This document shows positions 4,767 through 39,569 of a stretch of 64,000 nucleotides of DNA, one piece after another; position 1 is the first letter of the stretch; each line of letters opens with the position of its first letter. Source of the stretch: Oculina patagonica (lineage: Eukaryota). The notes below the pieces were generated by a model, which searched no databases, had not been told where the DNA came from, and worked only from the letters and a program-made list of their open reading frames with translations. Position numbers and translations under genes: made by a program. The DNA lies in NCBI RefSeq assembly GCF_052425735.1, contig NC_135761.1, forward strand, positions 33,728,001 through 33,792,000, in the 5' to 3' direction.

Positions 4767-5148
4767 GGTACTTGCAAGATTAATTTGTTTTAAAATGTCT
4801 CACCATGCCTTGATTTTAGAGTAAGAAATGGTGTAAAAAATGCTACACAGGAAATGTGATTGTGCTAGCATGTACTCTGTTTCATAGTTCCATATCCAAA
4901 AGAAAAAAGTGTTGCAGAATGAGCAGCAACATTATCTATTTTTGGACACCAAATTCCAACCTTTTCAATGTGACCGCTAGAGATTTCAATGAAAGAACCT
5001 GGGCATCAGTTAATTAGAGGAGGGTCTGAGATATTCCAAATTGAAGATTAATGCTAAACCCTTTGTTCCATGTGCTTGATGTCGAAGCGCTGCAAAGAAT
5101 TTCGAATTTTTCTCACCAAACACATCTTTAAAACCCCGCACACACTGA

Positions 5149-7790: not shown

Positions 7791-8667
7791 CTTCTGGTAC
7801 AAAGTTTGGCCTGTAAAAAGTGTTTATGGTGAGCATTTTGAGCGTGAAAGTTGCCATTACGGTATGCTAAACTTCAAGGTTTTATGACGAAACAAGCCAC
7901 GTTTATACCCAGTTAGATCATGTTTCAGCTGCTCGTGTTCACGGTTAGATAAAAGTGACGGTAGTATGAAAGATTGGGTGAATACCATAATTACGACCTG
8001 CATTTTACAGGAAATTATTAGTACAAAATCTTGCTATTATTGAAAGGTGCTCCTGACCAATCCATCTCAAGCTTAATAAAAAAATGTAAAGCAACATTCG
8101 ATGCACTCTTTTTGATGAAGTACATAAAAGTTATATCAAACCGGATGGCGAGCATCTGACAATAATATTGAACTTACAGTTTGTGTATAATTTATGACAA
8201 GAATGAGAGATTCATTTTTCTACTTTTAAAACAACAAAACTATTGGTTTACTTCCAAGGTGTAGAACAAAATATTTTGGTTTAAAATTTTTTGAAATTAC
8301 TGAGGGGTGGGGAAAGGATAATTAACTCCCCCTGGAAGAGAAATCATGTATGGGGTGAGGGTGCAAAACAAAATAGCCATCAGGGGCGTAGCCAGCCTAT
8401 AGGCCCGTAGGCCCGGGCCTACAAATTTTTTCGCCCACTTGAGTTTTTATAATATGATTATAATAAATGTTGAAATGAAAAAAAAATTATGACACATTTT
8501 CAAGTTTGTAAATAAGAAAGAAGGAGCAAGAATAAATCGCGTTAAAGCACACACACTAGTGCTGTTTTGACGAAATTTTGATAGTCAGCGGTCTTCAAAA
8601 AAGCTATTAAACCATACGTTCAGCGGTTACCGTCTACAAGGCAGCGAACAAATGCAGTTTCACAAAT

Positions 8668-8723
8668 ATGGCATCTAAAAGGCCCGGCAGTCGAAGCATT
8701 GATAGTTATTTCCAGAAAACAAG
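8668..8723 (+). CDS. Predicted leader exon 1 of the hAT element genes (MASKRPGSRSIDSYFQKT)
   Basis: ATG at 8668; hAT-like N-terminus (..SIDSYF.K); donor AG|GTATGT at 8724, phase 2. Confidence 0.7.
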
Positions 8724-9582
8724 GTATGTATTACCATTTAGTTTCTGTAGAAAGATAGATGAGAGCTGTTAGTACTAAACAAAGTTCGTGATATTAAAGT
8801 AACGACTGCAAATCCTAAGAGTTCTGTGTGCGGTCAAACATGAAACTGAAACAATTGGATCAACGGGCTATTAATTCAACTGCAATTTACAATATTCCAG
8901 ATTTGCCGTCTCTGCCTCAATGAGAATGTTCTGAAGTAACCTTGATACTTCTATTATAAAGCTTAATTAAATTATTTCTTTTAATATGTTCATTCAGTTA
9001 TCGTTTCGTTTCTAATGAACTGTCTATTCTGGCTACGATGGCCGAACACAGTTTGCGCGCGCTCTGTGGATTTTATCGCTGACGTAAGAAGCGCACGCGA
9101 GAGGGTTGAGAAAAACAACCGTGGAGCCGAAACAGTAATCACTTTATTTTTTCCTCGTTAAGGTTCCAGATGGATTGAAAAGAGCTTAAAATGACACAGT
9201 ATGTTCCGTGTCAAAACTTTTGTTACAACAGTATGTCAAAAAAGTTCAGGACGCAAAAAAACTCGGCCATTTTGGAGTCTGACTGTTGCCTTGAACTGTC
9301 CACGAGAACCCAGTTAAATGCAGCGCCATCTGGGACTATTAAAGTGCTTCGGTGGGATTTCACACAAATGCGCCGATTTTTGACAACCAGCCATTATCAG
9401 ATTTATAAAAAATTGGCAAAGACAACACTTCAGGAGACAATCAAGAGGCATTTTGCAACAAAAGAATGGAAATCTAATAGAGGGATTTTTTATGCTCTGC
9501 TGGGACATGTTAAAAAAAATTAAAATTCCCTCTTTGGAAACCCTATTTCTTTATGACATATTTGATTTAATTTTCAAAACAG

Positions 9583-9635
9583 CACTGCCACAAGTCAAAC
9601 CGATGGCGAAGATCCAAAACGGAAACGTTTGACAG
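9583..9635 (+). CDS. Predicted leader exon 2 (STATSQTDGEDPKRKRLT; NLS-like PKRKR)
   Basis: Acceptor ttttcaaaacAG at 9581-82, donor CAG|GTATAC at 9636; phase 2 in and phase 1 out, in frame with exon 1. Confidence 0.65.
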
Positions 9636-9906
9636 GTATACTATCTATTGGCCGCCAGGTTTAAATTTTTTAATACCACAGCCATGTTGTTATTTTAAAT
9701 AACTGAAATACTTTTTCTCGAGCTGTTTTTTTCCTTAAACAGCCAGAAAAACTAAAAGACATTGCAATCGTAATTTTATCTTATACAAATAACGAAATAG
9801 TGAAGCTAAAGACATTGAACAAGTTTGAAGATAAGTTAAGAATAAAATGCTGCCACATATGAACCGTGGAAAATGTAAAGTACTTTTTTTCATTTTTTCA
9901 TTGAAG

Positions 9907-10706
9907 AATCAGATGTGACCAGCAGTGATAGTGTAGAGTCTGTGGACCCAGACAAAAGCTTGAAACATGGATCATCAGGTGCCTCGCCCTTTCACATCCT
10001 TGATCTTCCTGAGGAGATATTGCTTACTATTTTTAAATACCTTCCATTGAGAGAAGCTAAGCAAACATATCTAGAGTTTGTAATATTTCAAGAGATTGGT
10101 GAACAGTGGAACAATGTGGAAATCATTTGGATTTTTGGACGATTTTGTTGTATTAAGTACGACAAAAAGTTTTTGATACCATATTTGATCATTCTCATCA
10201 GTTTCAGGAGTTGTATTTTAATGGCGACTTTGAAGCATTACTATCCCAAGTACCACTTGATTATTGTACTCAAAACTATCTGCATGCTGTAACTTGAAAG
10301 TCTTAGATTTAACTACAAATAGGAGTGTGCGTGAAATTCATTTGTTGTAAGTATGCCCAACCTAGAAAGTCTATTTCTTGAATGGTGTACACAGCTGATT
10401 CCAGATTCAGTCGTAGCTCTCTTATCGAAAGAACATCTTTGTCCCAAATTGAAGCAATTAAGCATGCGGAGGTGCGAGCAGTTTTTGGAAACAGAAATCA
10501 TGACCATTGTTATTTCACACAAAAAGCTTGAACGACTGGATATAAGTCACACAAGGGTGTTTAATGTTCAGTGCACTCTCAATATGATTAGTTCACTTCC
10601 TCGCCTCAAAGAGTTTGTGCTTTCTCCAGATTTAGACGAAAATAGTGAGGAGGAGTGGGAGCGTTTTCAAGCAAAATTTCCAATTCTTCGCTTTGAGTTA
10701 ATGTAG
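9907..10706 (+). CDS. F-box/leucine-rich-repeat (FBXL/AMN1-like) protein carried by the hAT element; frameshifted in this sequence
   Basis: F-box ILDLPEEILLTIFKYLP...SRVC..FKRLV..MWK (across frameshifts); LRRs MPNLESLFLEWCTQL, CPKLKQLSMRRCEQF, KLERLDISHT, LPRLKEF; stop at 10706. Confidence 0.85.
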
Positions 10707-10765
10707 TGCTTGGGGAAAAACGTTTTGCACGAACTGTTGAAATCCTGGAGAAAAGTTGTTGCTAA

Positions 10766-10771
10766 AATAAA
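10766..10771 (+). terminator. Polyadenylation signal of the F-box/LRR terminal exon
   Basis: AATAAA 60 nt after the F-box stop and 50 nt before the transposase acceptor. Confidence 0.5.
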
Positions 10772-10822
10772 TGAAAGTTGACTGTTAACTTAATTTTAAA
10801 CTTTCATTTCCCCTGCTTTCAG

Positions 10823-12949
10823 CCCGCCCTGCCGAAAGCAATTTGGTCAGTACGGCTGCACAAGTTCCATTCCCAGAATATGTGGACATTGCCTCCACAC
10901 AATTCAGGAATACAGATGACGAAATCAAGCTAAGTATTCTTTGTGAGAACTCAAAACACCCAAATGTGTGGCAAAAGTTTACTTTCCCGTCACACAACAT
11001 TGATGGTAAACAGAGAAAGGTGAACTACCAAATACTTGAAGCTACCCTGGATGAGATACTCGATCTCGAATGACTCTTGTATTGTGGTGTTTGCTGTATT
11101 TTAGCAATGAAGGTCAGGGTGATGTTTTCTGTAAAGGTAAAGGCAGAATGAGGAAAATTACAACTATTAGTCGTCACTGTCCAGAAAAGCAGCCACCATG
11201 GTGACCGTCGGGTAGGACGGGGGGAGTGAAGACACACGAAAGGAAAATTCAAAAAGTCTTATAGTTGTAAACAAAACATACCAGTTCGTTCATACTGAAG
11301 AAGATAGCAATTTCAAAGCGATACTGGAACGAGTTGCTGCCTCAAATACGGTTTTACTTGATCATCTAAAGAATGCCTCCCGAAACGCAACCTACATAAG
11401 CCCAGCAATCCAGAATGAAATCGACCTTTTGGTAAATGTTCGTAATGCTCTTGTGGAAGAGTGTAACGCAGCTCAGTGTTTTTCCTTGTTAGCAGACGAA
11501 GCAACAGACAGTGCAACTATTGAGCAAGTATCTATTTCAGTGAGGTATGTGCATCATAAAGACACTGGTGATATTCAAGTCAAGGAAGAATTCCTGGGTT
11601 TTAAAGAGGCACCTGGTCGGACAACAGCGGCTGTAATGCTGATCTCTTTTAAACTCCCTAAAAGAGTACAAAGTAAACACTAACACACTGCGGGGGCAGG
11701 GATATGATGGAGCTGCCAATATGGCAGGTACCGAAATGGGGTCCAGGCTAAAGTGAAGGAAGCCCACCCAAATGCGATATACGTTCATTGCCAATCACAC
11801 GCATTAAATCTCAGTATTGTCCACAGTTGCCAAGATAGAATTGTAAGGAACATGATGTCCACGGTACAGGAAATTGCATTTGCATTTTCTTTCTCAGCTA
11901 AGCGACAGCACCAATTTCAGGAGAAGTTAAAAGAAACACCTGAAAGTCAAGAGCAAATGGGACGACGAGCAAAGCTGCGAACACTTTGCGAGACTCGTTG
12001 GGGTGCAAGAGCTGACGCATTGTGTACTTTTAAGTCATCTTTCGATGTCATCTTAAAGGCTTTGGAGGTGCTTGACACTATACAGGACTCCAAAGCGAGA
12101 GGCTTTATAAATAGCATGCTCAAGTTTGAGTTTATAATAGCATTAATTGCTTCCGAATGGCTGCTGCAATTTATTGTGCCGTTGACCAATTATCTTCAAA
12201 CAGTTGATTTAGATTTACTTCAAGCACACGCTCAGGCCAATGTCGTTATCCAGTCACTTCGCAATGAGCGCAAGGACGAGTCCTGGAATAAGCTGCACGA
12301 AATGGCGGTATCTCTTGCAGTGAAGCATGATGTCGCAGTGTGTAAACCCAGACTAGCTGGTCGGCAGTTATTTCGAGAAAACGTTCCAGCAGATTCAGTC
12401 AGTGAATACTACAAGCTAGCGATGTATTATCCGTTCCTTGACCATTTAATATCGGAACTTGATTCCCGCCTTATCAAACCAAGTCCACTATTCAAAGTAA
12501 CAAATCTTTTGCCGAAAAATGTTGGCAACTGGTCTCCAGCTGAGATCAGTGCTAAAGAAATTTTGGACGCGTATGATCCCGATATTCCAGAAGATATTCA
12601 ACAGTTGCACGAGAGTGAATGCCTGCGGTGGAAATTGCGCTGGGACAAGGTGGACAATCCTCCAGCCACCATTGTTGAAACGCTTCCTCACTGTCGACCA
12701 CAAGAATTTCCAAATTTATCGAGGGCATTCACGGCACTTCTTACTCTGCCGATAACTACAGCCACTGCAGAGAGGTCTTTCAGTGCGTTGAGAAGACTTA
12801 AAACCTACTTGAGGTCAACGATGAAGGAAGATCGCCTGAGTGGACTTGCACTTATGCATATCCATAAACACGATGTGTCATTGAATGCTGAAGACATCGT
12901 TGATGATTTTGCGGCCTCTGGAAACAGGAGGATTGAGCTCCTTTTTTAG
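10823..12949 (+). CDS. hAT transposase (ZMYM1/P52rIPK-like: TTF zinc finger, DUF4371 core, C-terminal dimerisation domain); 5' half frameshifted
   Basis: Acceptor ctttcatttcccctgctttcAG at 10821-22; YPWMRYS...YCGVCCI; FSLLADEATD..EQVSISVRYV; GQGYDGAANM; YVHCQSHALNL; CETRW; TATAERSFSALRRLKTYLRSTM..RLSGLALM; 398-aa stretch 11753-12949 uninterrupted; AATAAA at 13060. Confidence 0.93.
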
Positions 12950-13284
12950 CTATTAGCTAGATTACTTTAGTGATAGGTTGACTTGTAACAGTGTATCGTT
13001 GGAGGAAGTCACTTTTAGTTGGTATTGAGTTCTATAGCTCAAACAAACAACAAAGAAACAATAAAATCATTTTTGAGGGTCTCTGCATAACAAACCTTCC
13101 GGCGAAGCATTTTACTGGGTCCCCTTAAACGCGGCCTTTATAATTTAGAGATCAGGCCTACAACAAGTTGAAAACCTGGCTACGCCCCTGGCCATCAATC
13201 AGTGTAAGGTCATGTATTTCTCTTACCACACATTAAGGACTTATTAAGACGAGATTTTTTTGAACTTCGAGCAACGCGCGGCCA

Positions 13285-13451
13285 AAATTCCCATGATGCC
13301 ATTCGTCACTCGTCGGCATTCACGTGTGTTTCGCGTCCGGAGGAATGGAGAGTTCGCTTTTCTCCTTTCTCTTCGCTTTTTACCCATCTGAACGAACGGA
13401 TATGAAGCAATTACTTTGGTAGAAGAAACTCCAAGTATGTAAACTGATATT
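13285..13451. repeat. 167-bp exact direct repeat, copy 1
   Basis: aaattcccatgatgcc...gtaaactgatatt identical to 15341-15507. Confidence 0.9.
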
Positions 13452-15340
13452 TGGCCCCGATAGAAATTAGATAAAGGACTATAAAACGTCGTGATATGCA
13501 TTTAACGCGGTCTGTTCTTGGAGAAGTGTGACTGATCCGGCCGGTCAACTTTCAATAACAGCATGGAGAATCCAGTAATAAAAGGTACATGTAATATTTT
13601 ACCTGTAAAAGTAATTAGTTCTTTCGTTTAGAAACAACCCTTCCTAACACAGAAATCCATTTGAAGGAACAGTTTGAAGCACCGATTGCAATATTACGGG
13701 AATATTATGACAGAGGAATATTTTTAGTGCAGTGTAGATTTTTTTCGCTACCATACTCATTCCCTTGTGATATCCTCGATCCTTGAGGGAAATTGCGATT
13801 CTACCCTGCATTTTTATGAACTTTATTTATAAGAACATTGTTAGAATAGAGGTTTAGCCTTAAATGGTTCTGTTTCACCTTTAGAATTCTTGAACACAAG
13901 CACAATAGCATTCTTGGGATTCCCATGGATTTGTTGATCACAAATCGATCCCCGCGTGCGAAATAATATTATTTATATTTCTTTTCAGAGAATATTCTCT
14001 TAAAACCTTGTTGTACTGAGGATTACCCACCTAAGGCAATTTATTTTATACATATTACACTCGATACTAACATTCTTCAAGTCAAATATATTTGAACCGG
14101 TTTTTTTTCTTCAACTCAAACTTGTAGGCTAACGCAATGTCAACAATAAAACATTGGCCGTTCAACAAGGATCAGCTTTCTTCTGGTAAGTACTGAGTTA
14201 ATGAACATACTGTCATTTCGAACTTCATATATAGTGATTTTACTTTTACGACATAATGTTCTTGGAACTGTGACTTTTGCTCAGCAATTACGCTTCTTTC
14301 GCAACGGAAATAATTGCCTCTAAATTGAATAATGAAGCAACGTGTTCAACGCTTCATCCTTGATTATTTGCGTTGTGTACCAGACAGTTATCATTACAAA
14401 TCAGTCCTTTAAAGAATAAGCTTGCTAGTGCTGTTTAAGTTGATATGATTTCGTTTTGAACCGGTTATACGATTGCAATTTGAAAATGCGCGAGCTTGGT
14501 TTGTTTATATTGAAATTCGATAGCTGCTACGATCGAAAAATTCTTTCACGTGCCAAGATTCTTTTTCGACGCGTCGATGCCAAGCTGAAAATATTTCGCT
14601 TGCACGCTTTGTATTTGGACGTCGATATTTTATGGTTTTGTGAAACCGTTATGGCCAGGTCACATCATTTCCATTCTTTATCAGAAATATAAAGCTATTT
14701 CATTTTAAACACTGTTACTGAGTACTTGTCCACTTGGAATGACAACTTAATCGATCTGTCGGTTTTGTAAATGCCATTTATTTGCGGTTTCTTATAGGTC
14801 AGTATTTGTTTGGGTTTGAGGTAAAACTTTCCTTTGATCAGAAATTCTTTTTCCTTGTTTTAAACATCAAAATTCCCGCCTTTTTTCCTGAGCTGGTGAC
14901 CGTCACGGAAAGCGCGGCAAAGTTGGCGCGCAGTGCGACGCAAGCCATCCGGCTTTTGCTATTGTTGTGTCGCCAACATGTCTGCAAAACGGCCGAAGTT
15001 CCCACTCAGGTAGTATAGAATTTGCAAGCGTTTCATTTGGAGTACTACAGTTTATCGTATTTCTTAAGTTAAACCATAAAAAATACTAATTTCACTTAAA
15101 TGCTGTGACATTATAGTGCCAATGCAATAATGCTTAAGCGCCGAAAAATGCAGACGGGAAGTTACAAGGTGCAAGGTGTTGTTTTTCCGGAAAAAGTAGA
15201 GAGGTATTTTTTTTTTCAAATCTGAATTTCATCCTAATCAATCAAATCTTGCAAGAAGAGAATTTAAGTTTTCTTTTCCTACAATTGCATTATATTTCAG
15301 AACCCCCGAAGAGATCGAAAAACAACAGGAAGAGGAATTG

Positions 15341-28647: not shown

Positions 28648-30277
28648 CAGGGGTTTCAATTGAAGCTGGCAACCGGCGAATTTCGCCGCCTACTTTCCAA
28701 ATCATCGCCGCCTACTTTCTAAGACCTTCTAACATTAAATTTCATTCGAGTTTCTTGAGTTTCTCGAGTCATACAATTTCTCAAAGCTCAAAGTCAAAGC
28801 TCTACAAGAGAACATCAACAACCGATTTGACGAGAGCCTTCGTGTCCTAACTGCATTCCGCATATTTGATGTCACTGCCATTTCCAATAGATCTGACATG
28901 GGATTTAAGGAGTACGGAGTCAAAGATGTGGAAATTCTGGCTGAACACTTCTTCCAGAAAGAGCCCGATGAAAAGAAAAATGAAAAGAAGCAGGAACTCC
29001 TCTCTCAATGGCAAAAGTTGAAATATAACTTTTTGCAAATAAGAGAAGACATTCCACCTGAAATTGCTAAGCTAACAAACAACATGATGACCAAGTCCCC
29101 AACAGAATGGCTTCTAGAGCAGATGCTCTCACTGCATTCAACTTACCAGCATTTTTTTCCTGGAATGCTCCGCATTGCTGAGGTATGCCTTTCTTTGCCA
29201 GTAAGCAACGCTTGGCCTGAAAGGGGCGCCTCAGCAATCAGGCGCATTAAGACGTGGATGAGAAGCACAATCAAGGATGATATGCTTGAGGCACTGATGC
29301 ATATTTCTATTAATGGTCCAAAGGTGAAGGAATGCAGTGGTGTTGTGAAGGAGTCGGTCCAACAGTGGTTAAAGGAGAAGCCTAGAAGAAAGCTGGCCAA
29401 GAAGACTGCAACTGGTAATCGTAACACCTGTACAGTTTCAACCAGTGATGCTGCAGTTCAAGTGGAGATTTCTGAAACTGAAGACGAAGAGCCTGAGAAT
29501 ATTGCTGAGAGCGAAGTAGTTCAGATTGAGGAGGAAGATCAGCTTCAACTTGAGGTTAATGCTGCTATTGCAGTGATGAAACTACCAGATGGTGAAGACA
29601 GTGACTCAGATAGCGCTTTTGAGTCAGACAAGGATTATGACTAACGTTATAGTTATGTGCGTCATACTCTGAAGTTATAGTCTAGCAAAGCGTGCTTCGT
29701 CCTTGCTAACTTGTCCTTGGATAACAGTTCTTTATTTATCCAATGCTGTATTTAAATATCTTTTTAGGTAACGAGCGGTTTTTAGTAGCTTTTACAAGTC
29801 ACATGTGGAAATCAGTAATGAAATATGCTAGTGACCATAGATCGATAGTAAGACAACAACAAAGCAAGATGAACTTTCATTTCATTTGTAAACATTGTTT
29901 TCCTGTTTCATTTGATGTTATACTTCTGGACTTCAGCTATGCATCTGCGAATGCTTCACATTGCTGTATAATGTATATAATGAAAAATTCCCAACATTCA
30001 GTATTCTATGGGTGACGTAATCCTTTTATTGAAATTAAACTTCACCTGAAAAACTAAAAATAGTTGTCACTTATGCTGTTGTTACTTAATCAATAATTAG
30101 TACTGAAATGGATGCCAGAATGCAGGAAATGGCATTTCCGAGCCTCTAGATGTAAAAAATTTCTGGGGGGGCATGCCCCCAAACCCCCCTAGGGGGGGGT
30201 GGCCTTACGGCCCCTCCATGTCACAGCCGCCTACTATAAAAGGGTCTGCCGCCTACTTCAAAACTTATTAAGCCCTG
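28648..30277 (+). mobile_element. Internally deleted hAT element (ZNF862-like transposase C-terminus)
   Basis: Left end CAGGGGTTTCAAT, right end CTTATTAAGCCCTG, GCCGCCTACT subterminal motif twice at each end; absent from the other unit copies. Confidence 0.8.
28898..29644 (+). pseudogene. hAT transposase C-terminal fragment (ZNF862-like)
   Basis: FPGMLRIAEVCLSLPVSNAWPERGASAIRRIKTWMRSTIKDDMLEALMHISINGP plus acidic tail. Confidence 0.85.
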
Positions 30278-35747: not shown

Positions 35748-36694
35748 ATAGGCGTAGCGTCCATATACGCACGAATACCCGTGCATACAGCTGACATCTG
35801 AGAATTTTTTTTTGGAATTACCTAAAAACGCTTTTTATCATTTTATTTGCTGGCTGATAATTTAATATTTGTCACATTACACTAGCGTTTTTTATCAGAT
35901 TTTCCTTTATTCAAGCATTGATTATTTAGTGCTAGCCACTAATGGCAAGATGCATTTGAGTGGTAAGTAAAAATAGAAAAAAGCGCCTCATGTACCCCTC
36001 CCTCCAGGTTAGCCTCGCCAGTTTCCCCAGGTATCTAGATGAGAGGTTACTATTGCATGGTAATCTCTGAGGATGAGTTTAAAACTGAAGTCACGAGATG
36101 GAAGCATAAATGGAGTGGCATGGATCCAAATGTGACACTGCATACTTTGGTTGAGACTCTTGACCACGCAAACTCCCAATTTTATCCCAGTGAATATGTT
36201 GCTCTCGTAACATTGTTAACTTATCCTGTGTCAAGCACTGCCAAAAGAAGCTTCAGTAGTATGAAAAGACTTAAATCTCCTCCACGAAGTACGAAAACGG
36301 ATAAAAGATTAAGGTCCATAGCAATCCTCCATATACATAAACACAAGAACGTGGATATTGACAGTGTAGTAACGGGGTTTGCCAGTCTTGAGGCTCGACG
36401 CCTTGCAATGTGACCTGTGTCCGCTGTTTTTGTTTTTCCTTTTGTAACACTGTAGCTTATGGGAAACACTAGAGCAAAGGTCAAAATAAACAGTCTTTCT
36501 ACTGCATTTTACTCTATTTATTGAAAATGCCCGCAGAAAAACCAGGAGATGGCATTTCCGAGAAGCTAAATATTTTAAAATTTTCTGGGGGACCAAGCCC
36601 CCAGACCCCCCTGGTAGTTAGTGTCTTTGGCGTTAACAAAAAATTTCTTCTCCTGCATACATCTCGAAAAATTGCACGCTACGCCCCTGATAGG
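35748..36694 (+). mobile_element. Small deleted hAT5-like element with 5-bp TSD ATAGG
   Basis: Left (ATAGG)cgtagcgt, right acgctacgcccctg(ATAGG); hAT C-terminal ORF 36039-36413; empty site ccacaacATAGGttgtacc at 24536-24540. Confidence 0.8.
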
Positions 36695-37904: not shown

Positions 37905-39569
37905 TGGGAGAGACCGACCTGGTGAGCAATGGCCGCGACCGGCCACGTTTTGTGAGCGAGAAGAAACCGCTCCCTCTGTGAACCTAAGACCAATGTCAAA
38001 TACTAATGTCAAGCACAAACAGTAAGAAAAACAAAAGAGGCGCTAGAGGATCAACTGAAGAAGAACCAACAGCGTCCAAACGACTGAATATGTCGTTGGC
38101 CGACAACAATAAGTCCGAAGAAGAAGTAATGGAGGCGACAACTGGTGCCGCCGAAACCACAGAACCAAACCTCGCCGATATCCAGGCGCTGCTGATAAGT
38201 ATTCAAAAAACAACTAACAGTATTCTCAAGGAAAACAACAAACTCTCAAATGAAGTTGGGGAACTCAAGTCATTGTTTAATAGGTTGGAAACTGAATTGC
38301 TGACAACAAAGACAACTCTAATCAAAGTGCAAAATACCAACAAAGAACTTAGAGTCGAACTTGACGCTGCAAAGCGAAAAATTTCTCAACAGAGAGAGGA
38401 AATTGACGGACTGCAGGATGGCATTGACGATCTGGAGCAATATTCCCGAAAGAACTCACTGGAAATTGTCGGCGTTCCGGGGAGTATACGCGATAACGAA
38501 GGAGCAGTTCTGAAAATCGCCAGAGTGCTAAATGTTGACATGAAACCAGAGGACATAGACATTTGCCATAGAGTAAGAAGAAAGAAATCGAACCCAATCA
38601 TTGTGTGCTTTGTCAGTCACAAGGTCAAAACTAAACTCTACAAGCAAAGAGTCCAACTTAAGCATGTGAACTTTTCATATTTATTTCCGGATGCAACCCC
38701 GGCTGATAGAGTTCAAGCCAACAAAATTTTCATAAATGAAAATTTAACAGCTTTCCGTAGGGAGTTATTGGGGAAGGCGCACGCAAGAAAACAAGAGCTT
38801 TCACTTCTTGGTATATGGACCATCGGTGGAAAAATGTTCGTCAAAACATCTCCAGAAGAAAGACCTATTCAAATTTATTCCGAACATGACTTAAATAACC
38901 TCTAGACCTCATGATTGTATATGGTAGGACTTGACATACAATAATCTCTGAATGGGGAGGCAAAATTATTTTTTCTCATGGGAGGCACCACAGCAAAGGT
39001 GTTTGCATCTTATTTGATCCAGCTATTCAACTAAATGAACAAAATAATTTCAGTAACAAAACAGGAAGAATTATTCTGATTACTGTGCATTTAAACGGCG
39101 TAAAAATCTCGCTATGCAATATTTATGCACCTACCTAACAACCAATCTGAACAAATAGAGTTCAGGAAAATTTAATTGGGGTTACTTCCAACCTACCTAA
39201 TAAGAAGAAGCTAGTGAAAAAACTTAATTTTACCTTGCTATATGCCCGATATTTTATTTATACGAATAAGTTTCATAATAAGTCTCTCCTTATCACAGAT
39301 TTTGTAAGTAGAATTTTAAGTAAGTACATGCTAGAAAACTTAGGTTTAAACTTGTATACGGAGTATCCATACTCCTTCTCAGGTCTTTTTTTTTCTCTTC
39401 TCTTTAATTCTCCTTGCTGCCCTACGTGCCAGTGGGCACAATGGGCAGTGAGTGAATCTTCAATTCTCCACTGTAATCTATTATTACGTAGTTTTACCAT
39501 TAATTGCATTGTAATATAACTATATATGTGTGACTATCAATAAAATAATAAAAAAAAAATGAAAAAAAC
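37905..39569 (+). mobile_element. Non-autonomous L1/Tx1-like LINE (ORF1 intact, ORF2 collapsed)
   Basis: 12-bp TSD AATATTCCGTCT (37893-37904, 39570-39581); AATAAA plus A-rich tail; APE endonuclease remnant WGGKIIFSHG..HSKGV.IL...GRII....NIYAP (38945-39135); ORF2 C-terminal remnant LNFTLLYARYFIY. Confidence 0.9.
38006..38905 (+). CDS. LINE ORF1 protein (coiled coil + RRM + CTD)
   Basis: 299-aa intact ORF; DDLEQYSRKNSLEIVGVP, DIDICHRV, PIIVCF, IFINENLT. Confidence 0.9.
   Translation: MSSTNSKKNKRGARGSTEEEPTASKRLNMSLADNNKSEEEVMEATTGAAETTEPNLADIQALLISIQKTTNSILKENNKLSNEVGELKSLFNRLETELLTTKTTLIKVQNTNKELRVELDAAKRKISQQREEIDGLQDGIDDLEQYSRKNSLEIVGVPGSIRDNEGAVLKIARVLNVDMKPEDIDICHRVRRKKSNPIIVCFVSHKVKTKLYKQRVQLKHVNFSYLFPDATPADRVQANKIFINENLTAFRRELLGKAHARKQELSLLGIWTIGGKMFVKTSPEERPIQIYSEHDLNNL

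Follow-up and report, generated by a model that had tools for sequence, protein, structure and literature searches.

Why does a DNA transposon of a stony coral carry coding sequence for an F-box/leucine-rich repeat (LRR) protein within an intron of its transposase gene, and how would this sequence be expressed? Here, we address this question for the hAT element at positions 8381 to 13190 of a 64,000-nt stretch of contig NC_135761.1 of Oculina patagonica (assembly GCF_052425735.1, positions 33,728,001 to 33,792,000 of the forward strand; the whole stretch is referred to as the window). A sequence-only reading of this DNA had suggested that the element switches between a ubiquitin ligase adaptor and its transposase by alternative splicing and polyadenylation. 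Based on an analysis of the element, its gene models and its relatives, we consider it probable, by a modest margin, that the element is one transcription unit that yields either the transposase or an F-box/LRR adaptor depending on the choice made at the donor of its third exon, and that the adaptor docks on the host SCF (Skp1-Cul1-F-box) ubiquitin ligase. Judged by exon phases, reading frames and processing signals, the proposed splice/polyadenylation switch is well supported structurally; moreover, we infer that both mRNAs are made and that their ratio is regulated.

The exons and polyadenylation signals of the element are arranged as follows, with a slash marking a splice junction.

8668-8723, + strand: exon 1, 56 nt; start codon and MASKRPGSRSIDSYFQKT with the PCNA-interaction (PIP)-box-like I-D-S-Y-F; donor AAG/GTATGT.
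9583-9635, + strand: exon 2, 53 nt; STATSQTDGEDPKRKRLT, basic and nuclear localization signal (NLS)-like, including PKRKR; ends in phase 1.
9907-9978, + strand: exon 3, 72 nt, acidic and Ser-rich; acceptor AG at 9905-9906; donor CAG/GTGCCT at 9978/9979, phase 1.
9979-10706, + strand: F-box/LRR segment, initially in frame with exon 3 and decayed further on; original stop at 10704-10706.
10766-10771, + strand: intronic AATAAA, 60 nt past the F-box stop and 51 nt before the acceptor of exon 4.
10823-12949, + strand: exon 4, hAT transposase; TTF-type zinc-finger motif, DUF4371, RNase-H-like core and hAT dimerization domain; C-terminal 398 codons intact.
13060-13065, + strand: AATAAA of the transposase, read directly.

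Conceptual splicing reproduced the coordinates of exons 1 and 2 and the PKRKR motif given by the sequence-only reading, and the two exons jointly terminate in phase 1. Because exon 3 is 72 nt long, the spliced and the read-through routes are both in frame. The acceptor AG at 10821-10822 is preceded by a pyrimidine tract; this acceptor, the one at 9905-9906 and the AATAAA signals at 10766 and 13060 are all present as previously placed. Read-through of the exon-3 donor enters the F-box motif in frame (...GSSGASPFHILDLPEEILLTIFKYLPLRE; longer stretch, ...GSSGASPFHILDLPEE...). As for the spliced route, the GenBank model of the window locus (P0002) and the RefSeq models of other copies (P0003 and P0124), which stem from two annotation pipelines, have N-termini that agree with exon 1 of the window and join exons 1, 2 and 3 to exon 4 at 10823, exactly as reproduced by conceptual splicing; the model P0121 also uses exon 3 and its donor. 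The F-box segment is intron 3 of these annotated transposase models, which may be purely predictive. The idea that this segment lies inside a transposase intron and shares the start codon and the NLS-like stretch was borne out, the segment being in frame with exons 1 to 3. Of the switch point originally proposed, the in-frame character of both routes held, but the choice between acceptors after exon 2 did not; because the gene models retain exon 3 in the transposase mRNA, we place the choice point at the exon-3 donor (9978/9979).

According to this model, splicing of the exon-3 donor (CAG/GTG) to 10822/10823 would remove the intronic poly(A) site and give rise to the transposase. If the donor is left unused, translation would proceed in frame into a compact F-box and approximately five LRRs and stop at 10706, giving an FBXL-type protein of ~300 aa, and the unspliced message may end at the intronic AATAAA at 10766, a putative poly(A) site that can serve within a composite terminal exon. 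Both products would share a leader of ~60 residues with a PIP-box-like I-[DE]-S-[FY]-F, an NLS-like basic region and an acidic region. The F-box protein would most likely dock on host Skp1-Cul1 as a substrate receptor, and its substrate would be ubiquitinated to the benefit of the element; this substrate could be either the transposase or a factor of the host that holds transposition in check.

The same layout is found in three diverged relatives, which we refer to as L008, L010 and L012 (all contigs fetched from Logan and ENA contain introns and are, therefore, genomic). L008 (5.0 kb) has terminal inverted repeats (TIRs) CAGGGGCGGATCCAGG at 129-144 and 4939-4954 and exons of 56, 47 and 72 nt; exon 1, as long as its Oculina counterpart, codes for ...TIDSFFEKRR, exon 2 for the basic ...PTKRSKQ, and exon 3 ends in CAG/GTGACG. 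Read-through gives an open 303-aa F-box/LRR protein followed by an AATAAA at 1611, and a strong acceptor at 1662/1663 is in phase with a transposase leader resembling that of Oculina. The L010 sequence starts with exon 1, which encodes MKKIESFFVKK; exon 2 encodes the basic SPKRLARSR, and exon 3 is 114 nt long and ends in CAG/GTGACT; read-through gives an open 311-aa protein with no ATG in the F-box part, the first in-frame ATG lying >100 codons in, and an AATAAA at 1306 is followed by an acceptor at 1434/1435 that leads in frame to a DUF4371 transposase. L012, an element at 8896-14343 of a 469-kb contig with ~80% nucleotide identity to the Oculina element in coding DNA, has the same exons and donor as Oculina, with the basic stretch LKRKRLT in exon 2 and the junction ...SGAFHILDLPQE in frame. 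Exon 1 is homologous to that of the window in all three relatives, and the exon-3 donor occupies the same place and phase (CAG/GTGAC in L008 and L010; CAG/GTGCC in L012). In all lineages, this donor lacks the consensus G at +5 and keeps GTG; its sequence is also constrained by encoding Gly-Asp or Gly-Ala. In five of five loci, namely, the window, the three relatives and L001, which contains a second Oculina copy, an AATAAA is present downstream of the F-box stop and upstream of the acceptor. The shared 5' exons are in frame with both downstream regions in the window, L008 and L010 by conceptual splicing and in L012 at the junction; in L001 they are not, owing to a derived frameshift. Three independent lineages agree in two phases each, for which the chance expectation is ~(1/3)^6. 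A fusion of the F-box protein to the transposase was considered as a third product and rejected; no phase-1 donor was found close to the F-box stop, either in the window or in L008, and the C-terminus of the F-box protein is conserved up to the stop.

The N-terminal exons encode the motif [KR]xx-I/L-[DE]-x-[FY]-F-x-K, which is located at 8695-8712 in the window. The variants SIDSYFQK, TIDSFFEK, KIESFFVK, TIDSFFQK, KLDFYFSK, TIDRFFSK and NITSFFAK derive from exon 1 of the window, L008, L010 and L012, from the bivalve ZMYM1-like models P0038 and P0059, and from a minus-strand open reading frame (ORF) in L007, a further locus with an F-box gene. I-[DE]-S-[FY]-F is also present at the N-terminus of related bivalve transposase models. 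This motif presumably resembles an N-terminal PIP box, which we treat as a lead only; judging from the exon arrangement, such a leader would be common to both isoforms.

In the window, the F-box/LRR segment had been described as a continuous ORF ending at 10706. This did not hold, as the frame contains stops at 10290-10292, 10320-10322 and 10332-10334 and, compared with L001, 1-bp deletions at ~10058, 10083, 10145, 10167, 10263 and 10337. The read-through product loses homology to the F-box after LPLRE, where the domain is frameshifted, and ends after 164 aa; its F-box reaches only 21.9 bits against Pfam. Similarly, the frame of exon 4 is broken by ~20 indels at 11039-11729, and the first stop is at residue 143 of the spliced product; the PF05699 dimerization domain scores 50.4 bits (cut-off 21.4; window 11753-12949), and pieces upstream match DUF4371. 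The window copy as assembled, thus, encodes neither protein intact. Relative to L001, it has ~30 deletions (mostly 1 bp, a few of 2-35 bp), zero insertions and very few substitutions. The deletions are derived, with L012 as the outgroup, and cluster in two zones (9988-10337 and 11039-11729); the remaining element is near-identical to L001. Such a pattern is unusual for natural decay and may reflect real decay or an assembly/polishing artefact.

The L001 copy, by comparison, contains an uninterrupted F-box/LRR ORF of 248 codons (L001:34727-35470), which matches F-box-like with 45.3 bits (cut-off 24.3), F-box with 39.5 bits (cut-off 20.5) and LRR_4 with 30.2 bits (gathering cut-off 27); its transposase is open apart from one stop, and DUF4371 scores 75.3 bits. 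This ORF begins at an internal ATG (34727) in the +1 frame relative to exon 3, and exon-3 read-through stops after 8 codons; the frameshift is caused by a TT-for-C difference at window 9988-9992. Because the outgroup L012 shares the window state, the in-frame junction is ancestral and the +1 shift in L001 derived. The L001 ATG as the ancestral start was rejected after this polarization. An AlphaFold (AF2) model of the F-box protein, built on a 22-sequence family alignment (pLDDT 93, pTM 0.86), has three F-box helices followed by an LRR solenoid of alternating strand and helix. The best structural matches in Foldseek are SKP2, FBXL2, FBXL17, FBXL3 and FBXL5, all in SKP1 complexes, and a sequence profile search also matches FBXL2, FBXL17 and SKP2. 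In this model, the protein is predicted to fold like Skp2/FBXL2; from its canonical F-box only, we infer that it would bind Skp1 and assemble into an SCF complex.

The F-box ORF is intact in five loci, i.e., L001, L002, L007, L008 and L010. Pairwise dN/dS is ~0.15 where dS is unsaturated and 0.385 in the comparison with the sister L012 (dS 0.57, 217 codons), for which the transposase gives 0.13. In the comparisons among Oculina, L008 and L010, the F-box proteins are 42-49% identical and the transposases 28-30%. These values indicate that the F-box gene is maintained by purifying selection and that, at depth, its product is more conserved than the transposase; the higher F-box rate between close relatives would be consistent with partly relaxed constraint or with an interface that evolves adaptively. 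The sequence-only reading had held the arrangement to be too ordered for a chance capture, and it had proposed looking in related copies for an intact F-box gene with dN/dS below 1. Both points agree with our results: the layout recurs in three diverged relatives, and dN/dS in the related copies (0.15-0.385) is well below 1.

The following features define the ends of the window element.

8376-8380, unstranded: left target-site duplication (TSD), GCCAT, 5 bp, read directly; repeated after the right TIR.
8381-8395, + strand: left TIR, CAGGGGCGTAGCCAG; same end in L001 and L012, diverged form CAGGGGCGGATCCAGG in L008.
8416-8424, + strand: subterminal motif GGCCTACAA; second occurrence at 13155-13163 in the same orientation; present at both ends of L012, too.
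13176-13190, - strand: right TIR, 15 nt, 100% complementary to the left TIR.
13191-13195, unstranded: right TSD, GCCAT.

The 15-nt TIRs and the transposase domains confirm the earlier description of the element as a hAT transposon with perfect TIRs, and a TIR pattern search (≤2 mismatches) gave 3 matches in the window versus 0.02 expected by chance. The subterminal GGCCTACAA motif may be a transposase-binding site. The 398-codon ORF at 11753-12949 is 100% identical to annotated Oculina patagonica proteins (64.4-Mb contig), and 487 homologues of the transposase ORF were found; its domains assign the element, by sequence, to the DUF4371/"ZMYM1-like" hAT clade. The second full-length copy (L001:33136-38061) lies on a different chromosome, is 97.4% identical to the window copy, has its own 5-bp target duplication (CTGTC) and is inserted, on the same strand, in an intron of a host SRCR/fibronectin-III (fn3) gene (CM126642.1, L001 1-47502). 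A third copy, known from a protein model alone, is implied by the RefSeq model P0124, in which exon 1 differs. Based on the TIRs and 5-bp duplications, the second copy elsewhere and the implied third, we therefore conclude that the window element is a hAT DNA transposon that is young and present in few copies, rather than a host gene. A self-BLAST of the window returned the element alone and no further copy, and tblastn with 22 family members matched the window at 9906-10703 only. The GenBank model KAL9964914 (P0121, 1611 aa) joins host fn3 exons to exon 3 of the transposon and the transposase and is, thus, a predicted host-transposase chimera. The target duplication of hAT elements is usually 8 bp, and its length is normally constant within one transposase family. 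The duplications are 5 bp in both Oculina copies, instead of the usual 8 bp, and 8 bp in the sister L012 (TCGTAATG). A subgroup with 5-bp TSDs, hAT5, has been defined (PMC12730594, citing Kapitonov and Jurka 2007).

F-box relatives are also found in other transposon contexts. A protein search with the L001 sequence returned three clusters only (48-60% identity), and an exhaustive profile search gave more matches. Among the closest matches of the exhaustive search, there was no named host paralogue, and no top match had a functional name, consistent with a gene that is concealed within repeat-derived introns; a word-index profile search with alignment A2 for named family members added almost nothing. 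A Porites lobata protein belongs to a family cluster of 42 near-identical members that are spread over many contigs. In five contigs (L002-L006), an F-box protein 60% identical to that of Oculina is encoded upstream of a very different hAT-type transposase, for which BLASTP gives no significant match, although the DE, C-x-TRW and ERxFS motifs are collinear; the candidate TIRs that enclose these genes are CAGGG[C/T]TCGTACA. The F-box gene of L002 has a private mini-exon (METKN), and the transposase has a separate ATG at 1836. In L002, an 84-nt perfect inverted repeat at 2213-2456 (a hairpin/foldback, possibly a miniature inverted-repeat transposable element [MITE]) lies in the intron between the zinc-finger and main transposase exons. 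The F-box gene of L007 has its own ATG and faces a zf-C17orf113 zinc-finger ORF; that of L011 also has its own ATG, and the 347-aa ORF downstream of it has no Pfam match. More distantly, L016 (Logan ERR14113986, 1076-5950) encodes P0246, a full-length collinear relative with 24% identity, which is flanked on one side by a Myb/SANT-like ORF and on the other by an intact ORF for a DDE_Tnp_4 transposase that runs on the opposite strand. A Myb/SANT-like and DDE_Tnp_4 pair is the gene pair of PIF/Harbinger elements, and by this gene content, L016 looks like a Harbinger-like locus; no clear TIRs were found in the contig. A scan of JGI metagenomes gave mostly generic F-box matches and one decayed locus (L017) beside a possible Pif1/Helitron-like helicase fragment. 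The contigs L014 and L015 do not extend far enough to reveal their genomic context.

We tentatively raise a broader possibility, which we hold to be less probable than not, namely, that the compact F-box/LRR family is a dedicated accessory module that is carried by DNA transposons of corals and further marine invertebrates and shuffled horizontally; its carriers would include two lineages of hATs and one PIF/Harbinger-like element. In DUF4371 hATs, this module would be expressed via the transposase 5' exons by the splice/polyadenylation choice, and it would act as a transposon-encoded SCF adaptor that destroys a limiting factor of the host or tunes the transposase.

Several observations weigh against a choice at the exon-3 donor. 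Both Oculina copies that can be inspected are defective for joining the leader to the F-box protein, the window copy because the F-box body is frameshifted and L001 because, after the frameshift at the junction, its intact ORF is in a different frame from exon 3 and begins at an internal ATG. The spliced product of L008 runs into a stop after 131 aa, and a further intron or a frameshift must be assumed. The F-box genes of L002, L007 and L011 have their own ATG or their own small 5' exon, and the shared exons are, therefore, not universal. Finally, the phase-1 donor at 9979 had been called weak by the sequence-only reading and said to splice in frame to the transposase; the frame is corroborated by the gene models that use this donor and by its conservation, but a simple consensus count does not make it clearly weaker than the exon-2 donor, and we therefore do not rely on its "weakness."

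These observations bear on the alternative that the F-box gene is a conserved accessory gene nested in the transposase intron, with its own internal promoter and start codon and no isoform switch. Such a gene would account for the L001 ORF, which starts at its own ATG (34727) out of frame with exon 3, for the ATGs in L007 and L011, and for the METKN exon of L002 next to a separate transposase ATG. It would not account for the four loci (the window, L012, L008 and L010) in which the F-box frame has no ATG before the LP motif and in which the position and phase of the donor are identical, nor for a frame that stays open when followed upstream across exon 3 and that matches the phase of exons 1 and 2; moreover, the ATG frame of L001 stems from a derived 1-nt insertion. 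We consider this alternative rather unlikely, although it is the most serious one. Much less probable is that the segment is functionless passenger DNA, i.e., a fragment or retrocopy of a host gene that was captured by one hAT family (Pack-type) and is in frame by coincidence. DNA transposons commonly capture genes, the ORF is intronless and followed by an AATAAA, and the segment in the window is full of stops and frameshifts; however, the same gene occurs at the same position and in the same phase even where transposase identity has dropped to 28-30%, five lineages have kept the ORF intact (dN/dS 0.15-0.39), the closest matches of the exhaustive search include no named host paralogue, and the segment is not bracketed by inverted repeats. 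From these comparisons, chance capture is excluded. An independent nested insertion with its own ends, which the sequence-only reading had named as a possible objection, was also rejected, as no such ends were found and the layout is conserved. The least probable alternative, to which we give hardly any weight, is that the locus is a domesticated, immobile host gene, similar to ZMYM1, in which an F-box exon serves as an alternative last exon. The RefSeq name of the models, "zinc finger MYM-type protein 1-like," speaks for it, but the perfect TIRs and target duplications, the at least 2-3 copies on two chromosomes (97-99% identical, at unrelated sites, one of them within the SRCR/fn3 intron), and the disabling mutations in every inspected copy all argue against a host gene. 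Altogether, we favor a single transcription unit in which the exon-3 donor would decide between the transposase and the F-box/LRR adaptor.

The window contains three further features. A lone TIR-like sequence, CAGGGGCGTAGCGTG, at 36675-36689 (- strand) has 2 mismatches to the TIR of the element, and no partner was found within 6 kb; one end of a related element or MITE may have been left behind at this site. A 248-aa ORF at 28898-29644 (+ strand), which contains a hAT dimerization domain (25.2 bits) and has an acidic tail, represents the C-terminal part left over from another hAT transposase, and no F-box relative was found near it. A 299-aa ORF at 38006-38905 (+ strand) matches Baculovirus FP protein domain 2 only weakly, with 21.5 bits and, hence, below the cut-off of 24.

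The proposed mechanism has parallels in known systems. In the P element of Drosophila, a repressor is produced in place of the transposase when the third intron is retained. As in the coral element, one unit with an unused intron donor gives a second protein that shares the transposase N-terminus and ends within the intron; however, the P element product is a truncated transposase, whereas the coral intron encodes a complete, unrelated F-box/LRR domain and a poly(A) signal, and the superfamily is different. En/Spm (CACTA) elements produce TnpA and TnpD from one unit by alternative splicing and, thus, also make two proteins from common 5' exons of a DNA transposon; in this case, both proteins function in DNA binding/transposition, neither is a ubiquitin ligase adaptor, and the element is a plant element of another superfamily. 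F-box proteins of parasites that hijack the host SCF include polerovirus P0, which acts on AGO1, nanovirus Clink and poxvirus PRANC proteins. Here, too, a genetic parasite encodes an F-box adaptor that presumably redirects host ubiquitination, but the carriers are viruses or bacteria, and the coral case involves a cut-and-paste transposon and a canonical FBXL-type F-box with CC-type LRRs. Among accessory genes of transposons, VANC of VANDAL elements is an anti-silencing gene. Fungal hAT, IS3EU and other DNA transposons encode a TET/JBP dioxygenase (PMC12730594). Like the coral gene, these are conserved non-transposase genes that occur in several DNA transposon lineages and are thought to act on host control; unlike them, the coral gene would encode a ubiquitin ligase adaptor rather than function in DNA demethylation or anti-silencing, and it is embedded in a transposase intron with shared exons.

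With regard to the two proteins themselves, the F-box protein resembles the FBXL family (SKP2, FBXL2, FBXL17, FBXL3 and FBXL5) in having an N-terminal F-box followed by an LRR solenoid; it differs in being much shorter (a domain of ~240 aa with approximately five repeats), only 16-20% identical, multicopy and encoded inside transposons. The transposase and the ends of the element resemble the DUF4371/ZMYM1-like/P52rIPK-like hAT clade and hAT5 in the short CAG... TIRs, the TTF-type zinc finger, DUF4371, the dimerization domain and, in the Oculina copies, the 5-bp TSDs; they differ in that the coral element carries a second conserved gene and in that the sister L012 has an 8-bp TSD. Eukaryotic cut-and-paste transposons are usually thought to encode only a transposase, and the few host-acting accessory genes known are mostly from plants and fungi. 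In a full-text literature search, we found no report of a hAT or any other transposon carrying an F-box/LRR gene; the nearest paper describes host F-box genes that have captured a mariner helix-turn-helix domain (PMC12062965).

If the proposed model is correct, the element would be the first case found of a transposon that carries its own ubiquitin ligase substrate receptor and, thus, the transposon counterpart of viral F-box suppressors such as polerovirus P0. Because the gene sits in the "introns" of repeat-derived gene models, this protein family is currently overlooked by genome annotation. With a defined protein, a defined partner (Skp1) and a defined isoform switch, it would make it possible to test directly how mobile elements regulate themselves or manipulate the proteostasis of their host.

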